DNA of 64,000 bases from Selaginella moellendorffii (Eukaryota > Plantae > Lycopodiophyta). The notes beneath the pieces were generated by a model, which saw nothing but the letters and a program-made list of their open reading frames with translations, was not told the DNA's origin and searched no databases. The DNA is taken from the NCBI RefSeq assembly GCF_000143415.4, contig NW_003314264.1, forward strand, positions 538,774 to 602,773, given 5' to 3'. Position numbers and translations under genes: made by a program. Position 1 is the stretch's first letter. Each line of letters starts with the position of its first letter. Positions 123 to 13,723 of this stretch are shown here, piece after piece.

Positions 123-1729
<1,607 letters not shown>

Positions 1730-1931
1730 CTTTATCTGAAAACGACACCGTTATGATCTTTATAATTCTTGGTTCATGATTCTTGCCACTACAATCCAGA
1801 TTGCATAATGACATGAGCCAACTATGTTCTGTGGACTTCTTCAGCATTGGTGGACCCATCAGTAGAAGCATGCGGTCAAGTTAAGTCTTTTGACACGGCA
1901 ATGAAATGAGAAGCGGAGCTCGAGCAATGCA

Positions 1932-4195
<2,264 letters not shown>

Positions 4196-4348
4196 TTCCA
4201 TTCTGATTTTGGAGCTTGTGGCGCGTGTTGATATGTTCTACCACGACACGAAAGGTTTAGAGAGACCTTTGTTTAGAAACGCAAGAGTACCTTATTTGCT
4301 GTCTAGACTTTAACGTGAATAAAAGATATTTGTGGCTGTAAAAGACGG

Positions 4349-7300
4349 TCACAGCTGAAACACCCCGACTTGGTGGTTGCCGCGGCTGAGAATTACAATT
4401 CGGTCCGACTTCCAATGCAAGCGAAAGGACAAATCAATCGTCTCCTCGCTTTCGCTTTCTTCCTCCTGCAAAGCACAAGATAAGATTGACAAAAGCAACA
4501 AGGCGCGAAGATTACCACTTCCTCGACATTCTTCGATCCACTCAAATTTCCGATAATGCTAGTGCTGGATGATTTTGGGGAGAATCCTGGCGAGGGTGGT
4601 AAGAGAACTAGCTTTGTGCACTGGACGGGCACGGTGGAGCGGCTCAGTTTGTCCCACCAAGCAGCGCCAACCGACCACCATCGAAGTATCAATCCTTGAT
4701 GTGAGAAAGCTACAAGACCCTGGAGCATGCAAACGAGCGATTAGAGTTTTTTATCCAGCTCAAGCTAAAATACCTCGCCATCATTCGAGAAGCTCAGAGC
4801 GGTAATTCCTAGCGTCCGAGTGGAGCTTCTAGCACTGGGAGACAATGCTGGATGTCCGGGAGGTCCACTGGCATCAAGAACCTTCATTATACTCGCACTG
4901 ACAAAAGAAAGAAAAAACATTTAAAAAACATGCTAGAAAAGAAAAACATTACCTGTAAAGGTCATATACATGAATCCTAAGCGACCGGATGTCACCCACT
5001 GGATCACCAACTGCAAGTTTGCCAGCTGCTGATTGAGCAACCGGATGGTAAAGAGCAACCATAGGAAACGCTTGAGACATCTCCTTGATCACTTCCATGA
5101 TAATAGGAAAGTTGTGCCGTCTTTGCAGCGAATCCGCAGGATCCAATAGACGAACAGCCAGCGAAACAATCTGCTAGCACAGAATAGTCACGAGCTATAG
5201 CAAAAAAAAAAGATAAAGATAAAGAAAAACTGACCCGTCCAAGACACGCAATGACAGTCGACGGAGACGTACGTATAACTTGAACTAGCGACGTGAGTCC
5301 CAGTAAAACGCTCGAAGAAGATTTCGTCGATGCTACTCTTTCCAGAGCAATCAAGAAAGCGGGCATGTCCGCGAGCGCAAGAGCTGACAAGAGCGCTCGG
5401 TGGTGTTCCGTAGTAGCAATGTGACCACCATGATCCCCGTCACCGCCAATGCATTGGATGAGAAAGAGCACGTCCGAGGTGAGCTGGGACACTTCCTCTG
5501 ACTGTATAAGTGGCTGCCAAGTGCTCGCCATCCCAGCACACAAAACCTCCGCTGCTGTAGCGCTGTGCCTATCACTTGTTCGCACTAGCTTGAGCAGTAA
5601 GGGAGCGGTGGAGCTCGACAAGTCATGCCGCACCAAGGACTTGTGCCAGATTGCCAATGCTCCACACATGATGATTCTGCAAGCTCTACCATCCTGGTCC
5701 GAGCCACCTGTGAGGCCAAGCCATGTTTCCTGTCCTCCTGACGATTCTAGCCACTCGAGAAGATCATCGAACGAGGAGCCGTTATCATTCTGTAAAATGT
5801 CTGGCACCGCTGTGGATGCTGCAGAATGGAATAAGAGACGGGCAGCCAGTCGGACATGCTCAGCAGGATCTTGCCAGAAACATGCAAATATCTGCACGTG
5901 AAACTCAGTTTAGAAGATCACATGGACAACTTACCTCCAGACAAGCATCACCAAGTTTCTCAACAGCTCCAGCCGTGTAGAAAGCAGCTAGTGCACTGAC
6001 CAAACACTCGTATCAGAAGTTCAACCACAAGAAGAAAGTTATTACCTGCAAATCATAGAGCCGGGAGCTGAAAACGTGAGCAAGCGCTGAGCGAGCGACA
6101 CCATCGTCAAAGCTCGCATTGAGAACAAAACCGACGAGCGGCTCCAAAACTGCGGAAATAAAGTTAGTATGGCGATGAGCAACGTAATGCCAACCTTAGA
6201 AGCTGCTTCTTTCGTTGGAAGTATTAGTGTAACGCTCCCTCTGTTCCCAGCTATACCTGCAGCAACGCGATGGTGCCTCGGTTGGAATACTTGCAGCTCG
6301 TCTGCCACAGATTTGTCAAGCTCCTCATCAATTCCCCAAAAGTGAAGAACTGAAAGGCTCAGCTTCAAGAGCTTCTCGTCAACAGTGCTTAAAAGCGACG
6401 TCATGTCGAAGTGGATGGCCGCTATACCGGGAAACGGGCATCCTGCTCTGATAGCATGTTGCTTGCAGTGTGGATCCATACTACCTTGCACCTGGCTGCT
6501 TGTCATTTCTTGCGAAGCCATCGGACTATGTACATCGTCAAGAGGTAGAAGCAGCGAAGAAGCCGAAGTGAAGTCCCCATGCAGCTCGGTGGTACGCCTC
6601 TTCCGACTTGCAAAGTGCTTCAGCATCGACTGAGCAGCTGCTCCACGAAGAATACGCTCACGAGCACCGGAATGGATGTCCCATATGTACAAAACCAGCT
6701 GACCATCGCCGGCAGTGCACAGGACTGCAAGATAAGCTCTGAACTCGTCCCACACAACTTGTTGTATCACACCAGCATGCCCCGGAAATATCCTCTCGGT
6801 TCTCAAGCTCGTAAGTGACGACAATGCCACGGTCGAATCATCGGCCACGGAGACGAAGCACTCATCCCAAGGTGGCGAGGACTCTGGTGAAGGTAAAACA
6901 AACTGCCTTACAGGAGCAACGTGTGGATGAAGAACTGCTATCAAGCTCCTATTCCCTGCTTCTATATCCCATAAGCACACCGAGCCGTCCATACTTCCAG
7001 AAAGTAACACTTGCCTCAACTCGGACTGATGAACAGCAAGGCACTGGATCGATGGGCCGTTCTCACTCGCGTGTACTTCTTTCCTCCCAGGCTCCAGCTT
7101 TATAAGATCAAAGTCCCCGTTGGCGTATCCACACACGAAGATCGATGGAACTAGAGTCCCATAACTGGGAACAAGTAGCGAAGACGTGATGGTAATGCTG
7201 TTAGCAGTTTCCAAACCTTTCCAAAGCCGACCAGAGCTACCAAAGCTTGCTCTTCCTGTAGCAGCACCTTTCCAACTGGAAGTCCACACTGCTACACTGG

Positions 7301-8412
7301 CCTCCCGATTATAATCAATACGAACTATGATGTCACCGATAGAGCAGAAGGTGATCTTGCAGCCTGCACTTCCTTTGAGACCTGGCACGACACTAACGCG
7401 AGCGACAGAATTGCTTCCCTCCACGGAGTAAACGGTGGCTGATCCCTGTCCATCCCAAACTAGAAATTGATGTTTCTCGACGTCCCTCAGAAAGTATCCA
7501 CCGACCAAACACGTACCGTCTTCCCGATAGATCGACAAGTTTTCGAGTGATCTGAGCATCCATCCCAGTGGAGAAACCAAGAGCAAAAGTTTTCCGTCAT
7601 TGGACAGTGAGACTGCTTCAGCTGCTTCTACATGAAGATCTCCCTCTGCACCTTCCTGGCCAGACTTGTTCTTGGACCATACTTGAAAGTTGCCTTTTAA
7701 ATCCGCAACAGTAGCCTTAAACTCGTCCTGCTGTGCTACCACCACTAAGTCGTTGATTTCCCTCAGTCCAAGGAGCCCATGGTAGATGTTCTGCGTGACT
7801 CTGAGCGTGCTCGTGTCGACAACAAGGACGCCACCTTTTGCCTGCCCGGAGCTGCTAGAATGGTAACCAACGCAGATGTGTTTCGTCTCACCAGGAACAC
7901 GAGAAACTGATGTAGGCTGCGCAATCGATGGAGGCAACCGTCGCCTCCTTAAACATTTCCCAGTATCACTATCCCATACGCACATTCCCCGCTCGCTACA
8001 TACGCTAAGAACTCCACCTTGACTCTGGCTCTGGCTCCGGTCGCATGCCTGCAAGCCAACTATAGCAGCAGTATGCCCGCAAAGTAGCGCCAGTGGTAGC
8101 ACATCCTGCGAAGATATCCTTAGTTCATGCACCAAAAACAAAAACGAGAAAAGAAAGAGATGAAGATCCTCACCTCTGGAACAAAGTGCTCCCCACACTC
8201 ATCCTGCCAAGAGCCGAAAAGTCATGAGAGGAAAATTTGGATGCGAAGTTCCAGACCTTTGAGGATGAGCGTGAATCAAAGCTCCACAGAAAAATCTTGC
8301 CATCGGCAGCTCCAGTCCAGATTGTCGCAGGCTTGTCCAGAACAAGCGCCACTCGGACATCGTGCGCAAAGGTGTTGGATGCCCACAAGCCTTGCGAAAC
8401 TTCTAGCTTCAT
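4349..8412 (-). CDS. Large WD40-repeat protein, WDR7/rabconnectin-3beta-like
   Basis: N-terminus MKLEVSQGLWASNTFAH..IWTGAADGKIFLW; LLCGHTAAI, GKCLRRRRLP, LLSGSMDGSVCLWD, RIFPGH; last exon ..HQVGVFQL ends at TGA 4349-4351. Confidence 0.88.
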
Positions 8413-8433
8413 GGGAAATCTAGAAGGAACGTA

Positions 8434-8777
8434 TCAGTCGAACCATCCCTTTTGTCTATTACGCTCCAGGCGTTGTTCTCTCTGCCAAGAGCACCCAAAG
8501 TTTATAATGTTGATCGAGTGGAGATCGATGAAATCTAGAAAGAATATGTCTTACCTCTATCTTCTTGCACGATTTATAGACCTTGATCACGTCCTTGCAT
8601 CGATTCTTATCGGAATTCCTCTCCAGGCCTGGAAGAATCGTCATGACTTAGCTTGAATCGTTGATCACAGCACTTACACTTAAGACTAGCAGTGTACTGT
8701 GGATAACACATAGAATCCGCAATGCGCATCACGCCGGATCCCTCTTTGAGCTTCTGCGGGCCAGATCGCGACTCCAT
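8434..8777 (-). CDS. Twin CX9C (CHCH) mitochondrial protein, COX23/COX19 family, 73 aa, 3 exons (8777-8678, 8628-8555, 8481-8434)
   Basis: Manual splice with GT-AG introns gives MESRSGPQKLKEGSGVMRIADSMCYPQYTASLKCLERNSDKNRCKDVIKVYKSCKKIEREQRLERNRQKGWFD*, with two exact C-x9-C motifs. Confidence 0.88.
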
Positions 8778-8851
8778 TCCCTCCAAAGACCCTAATTTCC
8801 ACTCTAAAAATGTAGGGTTCTTAGTTCTAGAGTAAATTTCTAGCTAGAGCT

Positions 8852-10314
8852 ATGGAGGCTTGGGCTGCAGAGATCTTGGAGGCCGCCAACGATCCAGGCA
8901 CGGTGGAGTGGGTAAGATCGGTCCGGCGCTGCATTCACCGCAACCCGGAGCTGGGATTTGAGGAGCACCAGACGAGCGCCCTCATTCGCAGGGAGCTGGA
9001 TGGAATGGGGATTCCCTACCGGTGGCCAGTGGCCAAGACAGGAGTGGTGGCGACCATTGGGAGCGGCGATCGGCCGATTGTGGCGCTCAGGGCGGACATG
9101 GACGGTCTTCCGATCCAGGTACTGAAAGGAAGAACCAGATTTTTTAAGCATTGGCTCTTTGAGTAGGAGATGGTGGAGTGGGAGCACAAGAGCCAAGTGG
9201 ATGGGAAAATGCACGCTTGTGGACACGATGCTCACCTAGCCATGCTCCTTGGCGCTGCTAGGATTCTCTCGCGAAGGCGCCATCTTCTCAAAGTAAGCTC
9301 TCCTCGATCGAGTCTTTTCCTTTGTGCTTGAAAGTTTCGCTTGCGCAGGGAACGGTGCTTCTTCTCTTCCAGCCAGCTGAAGAAGGCAAAGCTGGCGCTC
9401 AAGTTATGGTCCAGGATGGAGCTCTTGGAGACGCCGAGGCCATCTTTGGCTTGCACGTAGCACCGGAAGCTCCGACGGGAATCATCGCGCTCCGGAGAGG
9501 ACCGTGCTTAGCCGGATCTCGCGCCTTCGAGGCCGAGATCAAGGGCCGAGGTGGTCATGCCGGTTGTCCAGATCACACTGCCGATCCCATCGTTGCGGCC
9601 TCGTTTGCGGTGATCAGCTTGCAGCCGCTCGTCTCTCGAGAAATGGATCCTCTTGGTAATCAGGTGAGCATCTCAACGCTTATTCGAGTGTTGTTTGTTT
9701 GTTTTTTTTTTCCTTTTCTTTTCTTTTTTCTTTTTTCTTTACATTTGCGAAGGTTGTTTCTGTGACTAGCATAAGTGGTGGGCATACCTTCAATGTCATT
9801 CCAGATTCTGTGACTCTCAAAGGCTCGTTCCGCTCCTTCTCCAAAGAAGGCATGGCTAAGCTTAAAGAGAGAATCCAGCAGGTTTGTGAGAAGCTTTTCT
9901 ACATACAAACAAGCTCTGAAACTTGCGTTTTAGATCATCGAGAGCCAGGCAGCTGTTCACAAATGCACCGCTCGCGTAGTCTTCGATGCAGACCGCCCGA
10001 TGTATCCAGCGACGATCAACGACGATAAATTGCACGACCACGCATCCTGGGTCGCAACGTCACTCTTTGGAAGCCACTGCGTACGCAACATCAAGCCGGT
10101 GATGGCTGCCGAAGACTTCTCGTTCTACTTGGAACGCATTCCAGGCATGTTTACTGGCCTGGGGATTCACAGCGAGGCAAAAGGAACTACTCATTTCGTC
10201 CACTCCGGTCTCTTCCGCATGGACGAAGACATGCTCCCCTGGGGAGTAGCGTTCCAAGCAGCCGTAGCCGAAGCATACATCAACGAGCTCCAGCCTCCTC
10301 TCGGACGGACGTAA
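8852..10314 (+). CDS. ILR1-like IAA-amino acid amidohydrolase (peptidase M20)
   Basis: [59 protein letters not shown] motifs across 5 exons. Confidence 0.95.
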
Positions 10315-10458
10315 ACAGCAACACAGCTGACAAATTCAAGGTACTATTTTTTCTTCTATGTTCTGCGTGGACGAACCACGTTTGGTTTTAAACAGGGCGC
10401 GAATAACCATGATAAGTTACGAGCACCAAGAACTCCGTGATCTAGAACCAAGTAAATA

Positions 10459-11384
10459 TCAGACATTTCCAAGCCAAGGCCCAGCGTTCGAGCTCTCGCA
10501 TCCTCTAGAGCTGACACACTCGCAGGAGCCGCCTAGAAACGATGGCAAGCTCTCCGCGTCGACGAGCTCCAGCAGCCTGGGAACGTAGTTGGTTCCGTGA
10601 ACTTCGATCTTCTTCTGGGTTTGGTTGTCGAGCCACGGTTTGACGATGCTCCAGAGCGCTTTGAAGTAAACCGGCGCGTTGACGATCACCATCTTTCCCA
10701 GGAACTCGGGGTAAAAGTCCTGGTCGATCCGGAGGATGGCTCTCACGAACTGGCGGACCTGTTTGCTTACGTGCTTTACCACCTGGAGGAGCGAGGCAAG
10801 AAAAAAGATGGAAACTTTTACAGCAAACGAGCCAAAAAAAAAAAAGAGGAACTTTACCACTCCTTTGAGGTCGAGAATCGCGAGTGATTGAGTGATCGCT
10901 CGGCCGGCGTCACGGGACGCAGCAGGGAGCCTGACATCCACGAAAATCTCCCACTCTTTGATGTGATCCAGCAGCATTCTCTCCATACTTGTCACTTTAA
11001 AGAGCTCTTCCAAGCGCAGCTTTCCCAGCCTTTCGATGTAGATTGGCCTTCCCAACTTGTCCACCTTGTGATAGAAACGCGGATAGAGCTCTTGCGTTGC
11101 ATCACGCTCTTGGAAATCAAACTCCTTTTTCCAAAGTTACTCGGAGGAGTAAGAACTTCGGGAAAGCTTTTGTAAAAGTTTACCTGTTTGATAGCGTCTG
11201 CTCGAACTTCTGCGCGCCATTGGAGCATGGCCTCGTACATGGCCTTTGCCTTCCACACATCAAACGATCTTGCCTTGAGAAATCTCACCAGGGTATCGAC
11301 GTCCCCTTGAATCTGGCGATCGCCCAAGAGCTTTTGCAGCCTCTCCAACGCCTCATTTTGGGACTCGTCCAGTGCGTCGACCAT
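10459..11384 (-). CDS. SEC14/CRAL-TRIO lipid-binding protein (5' end uncertain; may have upstream exons to ~11970)
   Basis: LVRFLKARSFDVWKA, YHKVDKLGRPIYIERLG, QDFYPEFLGKMVIVNAP, LPSFLGGSC. Confidence 0.9.
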
Positions 11385-13723
11385 TTCTTTCTCGTTTTTA
11401 CTCTTTCTGGCAAGATCCGAGCTGTTTGTCACGAAGAACTAGAGGATGCGATCAAATTCACGGACTTCACACACATAAAAAGTGAAAAGGTCGGACAAAG
11501 CAAGACTCTTTAACTTGCCTCGTCGCGAGATGGAGAATCTCTCCACCGAAAAGCCTGTTTAACAGCCTCTTGAGGCCGACTCATTGTCTGCTACTCGACG
11601 ACACTGTGACTTCCGATCGCCCGAAGCCACGAAAAAGCAAAAACAACTTGATCTGCTCACCGCAAAATACGATCGGAGCTCTTTTCCGAGACGAAGACAT
11701 GGCTCCAAACTTGGGCCTAGCAGCCAAGTATCATATGATATTCCGCAAAGTATATCCCTGCCTTTGGCGAGCGAAGACCAAGCTCTTACAAAATAAGAGA
11801 TTCCCGGTTCCTCTTCCTTGTCCGTAAAGTTTGCGGCACACATCCTACTAGAAGAACAAACAGGATATATAGGCTAGAAGAAAGATCGAGCGCATCAATC
11901 AATCAAACAAGAGAGACGAGAAAAAGAAGAGAACACCTCGAATCGAAACGTACTTGGTTGTTGCCATGCACACTCATCCAAGAATCTAAAGCTCCCGACT
12001 GTCAATCAATCGAGAAACATTGAAAAACTCGCGCGAGAACATGGTTGACGCAATGCAAACAAAGAGAGAAAAACTAAAGTTTCCACAAACCTGGCAGCGT
12101 CACAGCGCGTTCCCTCGAGCACAGGAGACCTAGGTGGAGTTTTAAATTCAAATTCAAAAAGAGAGACGTGCGCGCGCGCGGGACGCGGTCCATGAACCCT
12201 AGAAAGCCCCTTCCTCCTCGCTCCTTCCTTCCAATTCATGGAAGTAGGGCCGATCGAAAACGACCCCCTTTTCTTTTCGCGCGATTGTCATCTTGTTGTT
12301 TATTGTCCATGCGAGGATCTGACAGCCGTATGCCAAGTTGCCCCGGCCGAGAAGAAATGCATCCCATTTCTTCCTCTCCTCCAGAGGAAAAAGGAAAAGA
12401 AAGAAAGAACAGCGCGTCAGAGAAATGGGAGAGGAGAGGAAAGGGATTTGCCGATGCTGCTGCTGCCACAGGATCAATCAATCACAAGACCCCAGCAAGC
12501 AAAGAAGCAGCGCGCACTGCTGCGCGGGCGCAGAGAACAAAAAAGTTTTCCAGCAAGTTTTCCTTTACCCTCGAATGGGACGTGTTCATTCGTCGTGTCA
12601 TCATCAATTCAATCTTCCTTTTTCCCCTCTTTCTTGCTCGCCCAATTCGCACAAACAAATCGATCCATCTATCGCTCGCGAGTCGCGACAGTAAAATTCC
12701 AAGCTAACCCCCAGACAATGATTTTCTCGATCATTAAAATCCCTGATCCCATCGCCCCACCAAACTCTTGTGTGTGAGATCATCACACCTGGTTTCACTG
12801 TTGCTGCCCAAAATTTCCCATGAAGCTGATCCAGCCAGCAAAATTCTTCAGTTCCTCTCTGCCAAGATCAGCTCGATCGATCCATTCCATCGCTTCGATC
12901 GATGAGACCGCGCACCCCACCCCAGCCAGTTTTTTCTCTGATCAGATGCCTCAGACCGGGACAGCGACGCCTGGCCCAATTCGTAAAATCAGAGGAAAAA
13001 AAGATCGATCCATTCATGCGATTGCCATAAAAACTTTCCCCACTGCGCTGCTAACTCGATCTTTCTTTCACGAGAAATCAATCAATATGATACACACATG
13101 GGCGTCTCTGCCAGTACTGGCACAGCAAGAACAAACAAAGAGGAAAAAAAAAAACAACACCTCTATATATATGTATACGTAAGCATATCTGCCGCGCGGC
13201 ATGCCGCCCAGCCGGTATCAACACTGCACGGCATACCGCGCGGCACGATCGTCTGTGCGCCGCGCTGCCGCCGCCGCCCCCTTGGCTCGCGATTGCTCCG
13301 TGCCAAAGGGATTTATTTTCCTTGGCTGCCGCCTGGCCATGGCGATCGATCGTAGATCCTCCCCTTCTGTCACAAACCAATGTACACGCTTGTAGATCGA
13401 TCGGCCGCGCGCGCCAGCCAGCCAGCCAGCCAGCAGCAAACCATGAAATGAAAGAATTGCCCCCTTGCTGCTCGTTTCATTCGCTCCAAAATCTCTTCTC
13501 GCCCGATCGATCGCCTCGAGGAGCGGATGAAACGCGCAGCAGCAACCCTCGAAAGAAAAAAAAAAAAAAAGCCCCCCCAATCCTCTGTACGTATCGCTTC
13601 CTCCACCATCGCTTATTTTTTCCAGTGAGTTCCTCTGTTTTGGGAGAAAACAGAGCACTGTCGATCTCGGCTCCAATTCCTCCAATCCTGCCGGAAATTC
13701 CCCGAATCCCGCGAGAACCCACT

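Follow-up and report, generated by a model that had tools for sequence, protein, structure and literature searches.

A COX23/CHCHD7-like ORF ends 21 nt upstream of a WD40 gene in Selaginella moellendorffii: a candidate lineage-specific bicistronic transcription unit

In Selaginella moellendorffii, a small three-exon ORF with a twin-CX9C motif ends 21 nt upstream of the ATG of a large WD40 gene. Contigs of spliced RNA from four studies run collinearly through both. We favour the reading that both genes belong to a single transcription unit, in which the COX23-like ORF is the upstream, protein-coding cistron and the WD40 ORF the downstream one, and assign it a probability of roughly 0.55. This reading is based on the 21-nt gap, the joined spliced contigs, their similar depth over both parts and the lack of a poly(A) hexamer, as well as on the absence of an upstream ATG, the exons and spacer free of haplotype differences, the conserved clade to which the small product is assigned and the precedents of uORF homology group 8 and CDC26-TTM3. 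It is weakened by the layout of AUG codons, by the poor reinitiation expected, by the rare translation of second ORFs in Arabidopsis and by the lack of conservation of the pairing. All positions refer to the window, the whole 64,000-nt stretch of DNA that was analysed.

Under the favoured reading, a tiny divergent promoter region, shared with an ILR1-like gene, would drive a pre-mRNA that holds the COX23/CHCHD7-like twin-CX9C ORF and then the AT4G11270-like WD40 ORF, and the removal of four introns would yield a structurally bicistronic mature RNA. The small protein would be the favoured translation product, because its AUG comes first and carries a G both at -3 and at +4. Little WD40 protein would be produced, either through ribosomes that occasionally bypass the small ORF or reinitiate after it, or from a minor RNA starting inside the exons of the small gene. 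The small ORF would in effect be a long repressive coding uORF, probably NMD-sensitive, and the pairing would have arisen by transcriptional fusion within this lineage, where the genome is locally very compact. The anatomy, the splicing, the collinear RNA and the lack of conservation were observed; that one RNA molecule carries both ORFs, that both are translated and how the WD40 ORF is translated are points we infer from the locus. If one RNA does serve both genes, it would be a young, lineage-specific plant bicistron and could show how bicistrons originate when compaction of the genome joins a small mitochondrial gene to the gene beside it.

Layout and spliced RNA of the locus

The minus strand was read from 7400 to 9400 with its ORF list and translations, and the exons of the small ORF were joined with a local script for a frame check and an AUG count (Table 1). 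The small ORF opens at ATG 8777-8775 and closes, after three exons, at TGA 8436-8434, giving a product of 73 aa. Intron 1 splits the codon of Cys34, and intron 2 lies four residues past the fourth cysteine (Cys4). This reading, together with the translations, confirmed the anatomy put forward in the original prediction (three exons, 73 aa and a 21-nt in-frame gap), and the divergent ILR1-like gene that had been placed 74 nt beyond the small ATG was found there, with its own ATG at 8852.

Table 1. Positions of the features of the locus in the window
Feature	Position	Strand	Remarks
Small ORF, exon 1	8678..8777	-	ATG 8777 through first CX9 stretch; splice joint in four runs
Small ORF, intron 1	8629..8677	-	49 nt, GT..AG; joint 8627/8677 (cut +1) in 4/4 runs
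Small ORF, exon 2	8555..8628	-	Second CX9C, CKDVIKVYKSC
Small ORF, intron 2	8482..8554	-	73 nt, GT..AG; joint 8481/8555 in four runs
Small ORF, exon 3, coding part	8434..8481	-	Ends with TGA 8436-8434
Inter-ORF spacer	8413..8433	-	21 nt, TACGTTCCTTCTAGATTTCCC, in frame, stop-free, same in both haplotypes
WD40 gene, exon 1	8257..8412	-	From ATG 8412; protein begins MKLEVSQ
WD40 gene, exon 2	8174..8203	-	30 nt, DECGEHFVPE; from RNA joints and protein sequence
WD40 gene, large exon 3, start	6042..8105	-	Gene extends leftwards to about 4350
Divergent interval	8778..8851	.	74 nt between small-ORF ATG and ILR1-like (M20 peptidase) ATG 8852

The stop codon of the small ORF and the WD40 ATG at 8412 lie in the same frame, 21 nt apart. 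Chance gives a shared frame once in three, or with a probability of ~0.24 when a stop-free 7-codon spacer is also required, and the shared frame is by itself not beyond chance. The 21-nt spacing and the intact twin-CX9C ORF over three exons are not chance features. Dense packing was also seen across a wider region, from about 1350 to 11400, which holds CRAL_TRIO, M20 peptidase, WD40, stress-antifungal receptor kinase and MT-A70 genes.

Logan contigs of four runs from four studies (X1, X5, X9 and X13) were mapped on positions 6900-9600. All four minus-strand introns were spliced out in 4/4 runs, and in each run a single contig links WD40 exons 3, 2 and 1, the spacer and the three exons of the small ORF. 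Each bin had the depth obtained by multiplying contig depth by the bin's exonic fraction, showing that there are no intron-retaining or alternative contigs over 8100-8780; likewise, no second contig, intron-retaining contig or loose end was found across 8256-8481 in the assemblies of the four runs. In X13, the joining contig had a depth of 20.0 and the WD40 body one of 19.7, and in X9 the corresponding values were 11.9 and 12.1-16.1, which we count as weak evidence from contigs that are free of ILR1 sequence, contig depth being one mean per contig that is distorted by allele bubbles. X1 was left out of the depth argument, because its contig continues in the direction of the strongly expressed ILR1-like gene.

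In X5, the ILR1-like gene, with its splicing on the opposite strand, is part of the same contig, demonstrating that the assembler merges overlapping transcripts and that a contig is not equivalent to a single molecule. The earlier claim that one mRNA encodes both proteins therefore stands as far as collinear spliced contigs over both ORFs in four studies can carry it, and falls short at the step from such merged contigs to one molecule. The divergent interval is itself transcribed in X1 and X5, whose contigs span all of its 74 nt and reach into ILR1-like exon 1 (8786-8913), indicating that the 5' ends of the head-to-head transcripts overlap. The point at 8785 where the X9 and X13 contigs stop was considered as a transcription start and ruled out, since the two haplotypes, A and B, carry a SNP at 8786 and the contigs stop at the resulting allele bubble. 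Two further allelic features were seen within the WD40 gene: a 125-nt contig at 7502-7626, present in all four runs and overlapping its neighbours by 30 nt, is an allelic bubble, and residues 139-215 of the WD40 protein are a mixture of haplotype A and B residues in runs X5 and X13.

Because contigs are merged in this way, a WD40 start inside the small gene combined with polyadenylation of a small mRNA inside WD40 exons would look identical in these assemblies. This is the main competitor of a single transcription unit: two separate overlapping mRNAs, a short COX23-like one polyadenylated inside the WD40 exons and a WD40 one starting in small exon 2/3 or in the spacer. We consider it a serious alternative, though less likely than a single unit, and several observations speak for it besides the merging in X5. 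Nearby CDS-to-CDS gaps in the locus measure only 145-203 nt, so that UTRs commonly overlap in this region; with its AUG layout, a bicistronic RNA would yield WD40 protein inefficiently; and mRNAs of WD40 orthologues from other plants have short leaders (48-116 nt in three contigs). In Arabidopsis, moreover, start sites were detected for 202 second genes at 271 readthrough loci (PMC9768141), which points to monocistronic transcription there as well. On the other hand, no branch, intron-containing start or alternative end occurs in any of the four assemblies, contig depth is alike over both parts in X9 and X13, and separate mRNAs would need both a promoter and a terminator within coding exons. 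In addition, no A-rich, AAUAAA-like poly(A) signal hexamer is present for ~1.3 kb 3' of the small-ORF stop, which is mild evidence against a short separate small mRNA.

The small ORF and its family

The small product reads ADSMCYPQYTASLKCLERNSDKNRCKDVIKVYKSCKKIEREQR and carries C24-x9-C34 and C44-x9-C54, that is, a twin CX9C within 73 aa. It was compared by eye with the CHCH clade alignment in Additional file 1 of Hayden & Jorgensen 2007 (PMC2075485). There, the plant CHCHD7-like rows Phypa (MCAPQYAASLKCLDE..DKSKCQDHFDAYKEC), Arath2 (PCYLQYSASLKCLEE..DKSKCQDHFDVYKECKKKEREAR) and Erate (ACFPQYTASLKCLE..DKSKCQQQFDDYKECKKKEREAR) directly adjoin those of human CHCHD7 and yeast Cox23 (PMC2075485), and we take the block containing these three plant rows to be the CHCHD7-like clade of that paper. 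Counted by eye, ~27 of 44 residues of the Selaginella product are identical to the Erate row, and the clade-specific pattern QY.ASLKCLE ... DK..C......YK.CKK.ERE.R is likewise recognised by eye in the small product. The COX23-like label that the gene had been given at the outset thus holds, since the product fits the plant CHCHD7-like rows of the published alignment (PMC2075485), and judged by its sequence the small ORF belongs to a conserved plant COX23/CHCHD7-like clade. From its family, the small protein would be a Mia40-type intermembrane-space protein for cytochrome oxidase assembly.

Searches with single exons returned little. Exon 2 alone scored 16.5 bits (E 0.011) against Pfam COX17, under the cut-off of 24.9 for this single-exon query, and matched yeast Cox17 weakly in the PDB (E 1.6); exon 1 alone had no match in the PDB. 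No protein of 31-98 aa that shares words with exon 1 (plus the in-frame intron read-through) was found in a set of 5.8 billion protein clusters. The GenBank assembly annotation holds no gene model for the small ORF on either haplotype scaffold and leaves, on both, a 440-nt gene-free gap between the M20-peptidase (ILR1-like) and WD40 genes. We conclude that the small ORF is a real gene so far left unannotated. The Selaginella gene set gains a COX23-like gene, and the case is a caution that the supposed '5' UTR' of a larger gene model can conceal a conserved small gene.

Haplotypes A and B differ at 5/461 aligned positions, two in the leader and three in intron 1. The coding exons of the small ORF and the spacer carry zero differences, which has a probability of about p=0.02 if changes are spread evenly. 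One of the haplotype B changes, a T>A at 8786 in the minus-strand leader, introduces a further ATG in frame, three codons ahead of the small-ORF start (MEG-MESRS...), and the two alleles may therefore yield small proteins with different N-termini.

The missing gene model and the empty search of the 5.8-billion-cluster set for proteins of 31-98 aa would also fit a small ORF that is a decaying relic, which now does no more than provide the WD40 gene with a regulatory uORF or an intron-bearing 5' leader and makes no functional COX23-like protein. We regard such decay as improbable, as the frame is intact over three exons, all four cysteines are kept with exact x9 spacing, the match to the plant CHCHD7-like rows is close (~27/44 against Erate, by eye), the haplotypes are free of exonic differences and the start context is strong.

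Start codons, translation and known bicistronic loci

In the window, no minus-strand ATG occurs within 136 nt upstream of 8777, and the small-ORF start has a strong context, GGA-AUG-G (G at -3, G at +4). Four further AUGs lie between the small AUG and the WD40 AUG. Two of these are in frame (M17 and M23), and the other two are out of frame, each opening an 8-codon ORF; the second out-of-frame AUG has a strong context and its ORF ends 7 nt before the WD40 ATG. The WD40 start itself has a weak context, CCC-AUG-A (C at -3, A at +4). This AUG layout points to inefficient translation of WD40 from a bicistronic RNA. Reinitiation after 73 codons across a 21-nt gap is also expected to be inefficient.

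Leaky scanning had been suggested as one route to the WD40 protein and fits poorly, given the strong small AUG, the four AUGs that follow it and the weak WD40 AUG. Green-algal bicistrons that use leaky scanning have a weak Kozak context at ORF 1 and few AUGs before ORF 2 (PMC7896298; PMC11291117), whereas the Selaginella pair has a strong first AUG and four more, and so departs from the algal type on both counts. In other respects the pair resembles green-algal polycistronic loci (Gallaher 2021, PMC7896298; PMC11291117), with a small ORF 1, a tiny gap and independent ORFs separated by a stop.

A more specific version of events is that of a recent functional bicistron, in which the only COX23/CHCHD7-like gene was pushed against the WD40 gene and both proteins are made, WD40 by termination-reinitiation and not by leaky scanning. 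We hold this to be rather unlikely. Termination-reinitiation over the 21-nt spacer after a 73-codon ORF, if true, would tie WD40 output to the translation of the mitochondrial assembly factor. If one RNA serves both genes, the locus could also show how a downstream ORF is translated where the algal leaky-scanning rules fail. Together with uORF homology group 8, a recent bicistron of this kind would mean that CHCH small genes have repeatedly been captured as upstream cistrons.

In-frame UGA readthrough, another of the routes first suggested, would produce a fusion of the CX9C domain, YVPSRFP and the WD40 protein and is highly improbable: its one support is the common frame with a 7-codon spacer free of stops, but a shared frame arises by chance in 1 of 3 pairs, the stop context (UGA-UAC-GUU) contains a UGA-UAC that to our knowledge is no readthrough-promoting context, other plants have the same WD40 N-terminus as at ATG 8412, conserved and free, and an intermembrane-space protein would be hard to target correctly as part of a fusion. 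The same proportion is found among algal bicistrons, about one third of which are in frame, and this chance-level share argues against readthrough in them.

A single transcription unit has precedents in plants. In all land plants, a single transcript carries the CHCH ORF of uORF homology group 8 followed by a Mic1-like ORF; Hayden & Jorgensen 2007 explain this arrangement by a small gene that was formerly independent and became stably fused at the level of transcription (PMC2075485). The Selaginella locus is like group 8 in that a twin-CX9C small protein of about 60-70 aa forms the upstream cistron of a large unrelated ORF, and in that the second intron lies four residues after Cys4. It is unlike group 8, which represents a sister CHCH clade, in that its small ORF is CHCHD7-like, and the downstream partner is Mic1-like in group 8 and an AT4G11270-like WD40 protein in Selaginella. 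The first intron lies three residues after Cys1 in group 8 and in the Cys2 codon in Selaginella. Finally, group 8 is land-plant-wide and backed by cDNAs, whereas the Selaginella pairing was found only in Selaginella and from assembled contigs.

The bicistronic CDC26-TTM3 mRNA, conserved in plants and green algae according to the summary in PMC11291117, likewise encodes a small functional protein (65 aa there) ahead of a larger ORF. Regulation of the CDC26-TTM3 transcript through NMD is reported in that summary, and the same is expected for the Selaginella pair. Unlike the Selaginella pair, CDC26-TTM3 is deeply conserved and both of its products have been experimentally shown.

Arabidopsis has 271 polycistronic readthrough loci, at which the second ORF is rarely translated (PMC9768141). 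The Selaginella pair would be like these transcripts in comprising tandem genes that are co-transcribed, in being a target of nonsense-mediated decay and in the rare translation of its second ORF (PMC9768141). The Arabidopsis pairs differ in that most of their second genes have start sites of their own, so that the genes are also transcribed separately across real intergenic gaps, whereas the Selaginella ORFs are 21 nt apart and the assemblies show no separate form.

Conservation of the pairing and the WD40 gene

In the 10 kb upstream of the WD40 orthologue in Diphasiastrum complanatum and in Dioscorea, neither a match to any one of the three small-ORF exons nor a helix-like CX9C motif was found. 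The CHCHD7-like clade patterns had no match throughout the Diphasiastrum and Dioscorea loci (36 kb and 29 kb, respectively), nor in six orthologue mRNA contigs from four other plant sample sets; among the sequences scanned, they match only the two Selaginella haplotypes. The synteny check proposed with the original prediction therefore came out negative, the pair being conserved neither in another lycophyte (Diphasiastrum) nor in a monocot (Dioscorea). Absent from these two plants and from the other plant contigs, the pairing looks specific to the Selaginella lineage.

The downstream gene is LOC9643384 (XP_024521936.1, 1193 aa; scaffold GL377568.1), as found by querying exhaustively with the large WD40 exon in HMMER and looking up the members of the matching cluster. 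Residue 1 of XP_024521936.1 is the Met encoded at 8412; the protein opens MKLEVSQGLWA..., MKLEVSQGLWASNTFAHDV..., and agrees with WD40 exons 1 and 2, which encode 52 + 10 aa ahead of the large exon. An N-terminal motif, MKC..(L/C)W..P..H.V, is common to the Diphasiastrum and Dioscorea WD40 orthologues, showing that ATG 8412 is a conserved start and not an annotation artefact. The start that had been predicted at 8412 is thus the true WD40 N-terminus, as judged from residue 1 of the RefSeq protein and the alignment of orthologues.

Orthology of the WD40 protein to animal WDR7 received no confirmation from the searches. One orthologue is named 'like AT4G11270' in one source, a PDB sequence search with the WD40 protein returned generic WD40 chains only, and the protist and algal relatives of the protein bear no informative names. 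AT4G11270 is presumably linked to WDR7.

Two details of the WD40 gene models were observed as well. At about 6100-6200 on the minus strand, the large exon has an open stretch of 15 residues (VGITLLIAILTLFPQ) missing from the RefSeq protein, which implies an annotated 45-nt intron or an alternative form. Isoforms X1 and X2 of the WD40 protein differ by 10 aa.
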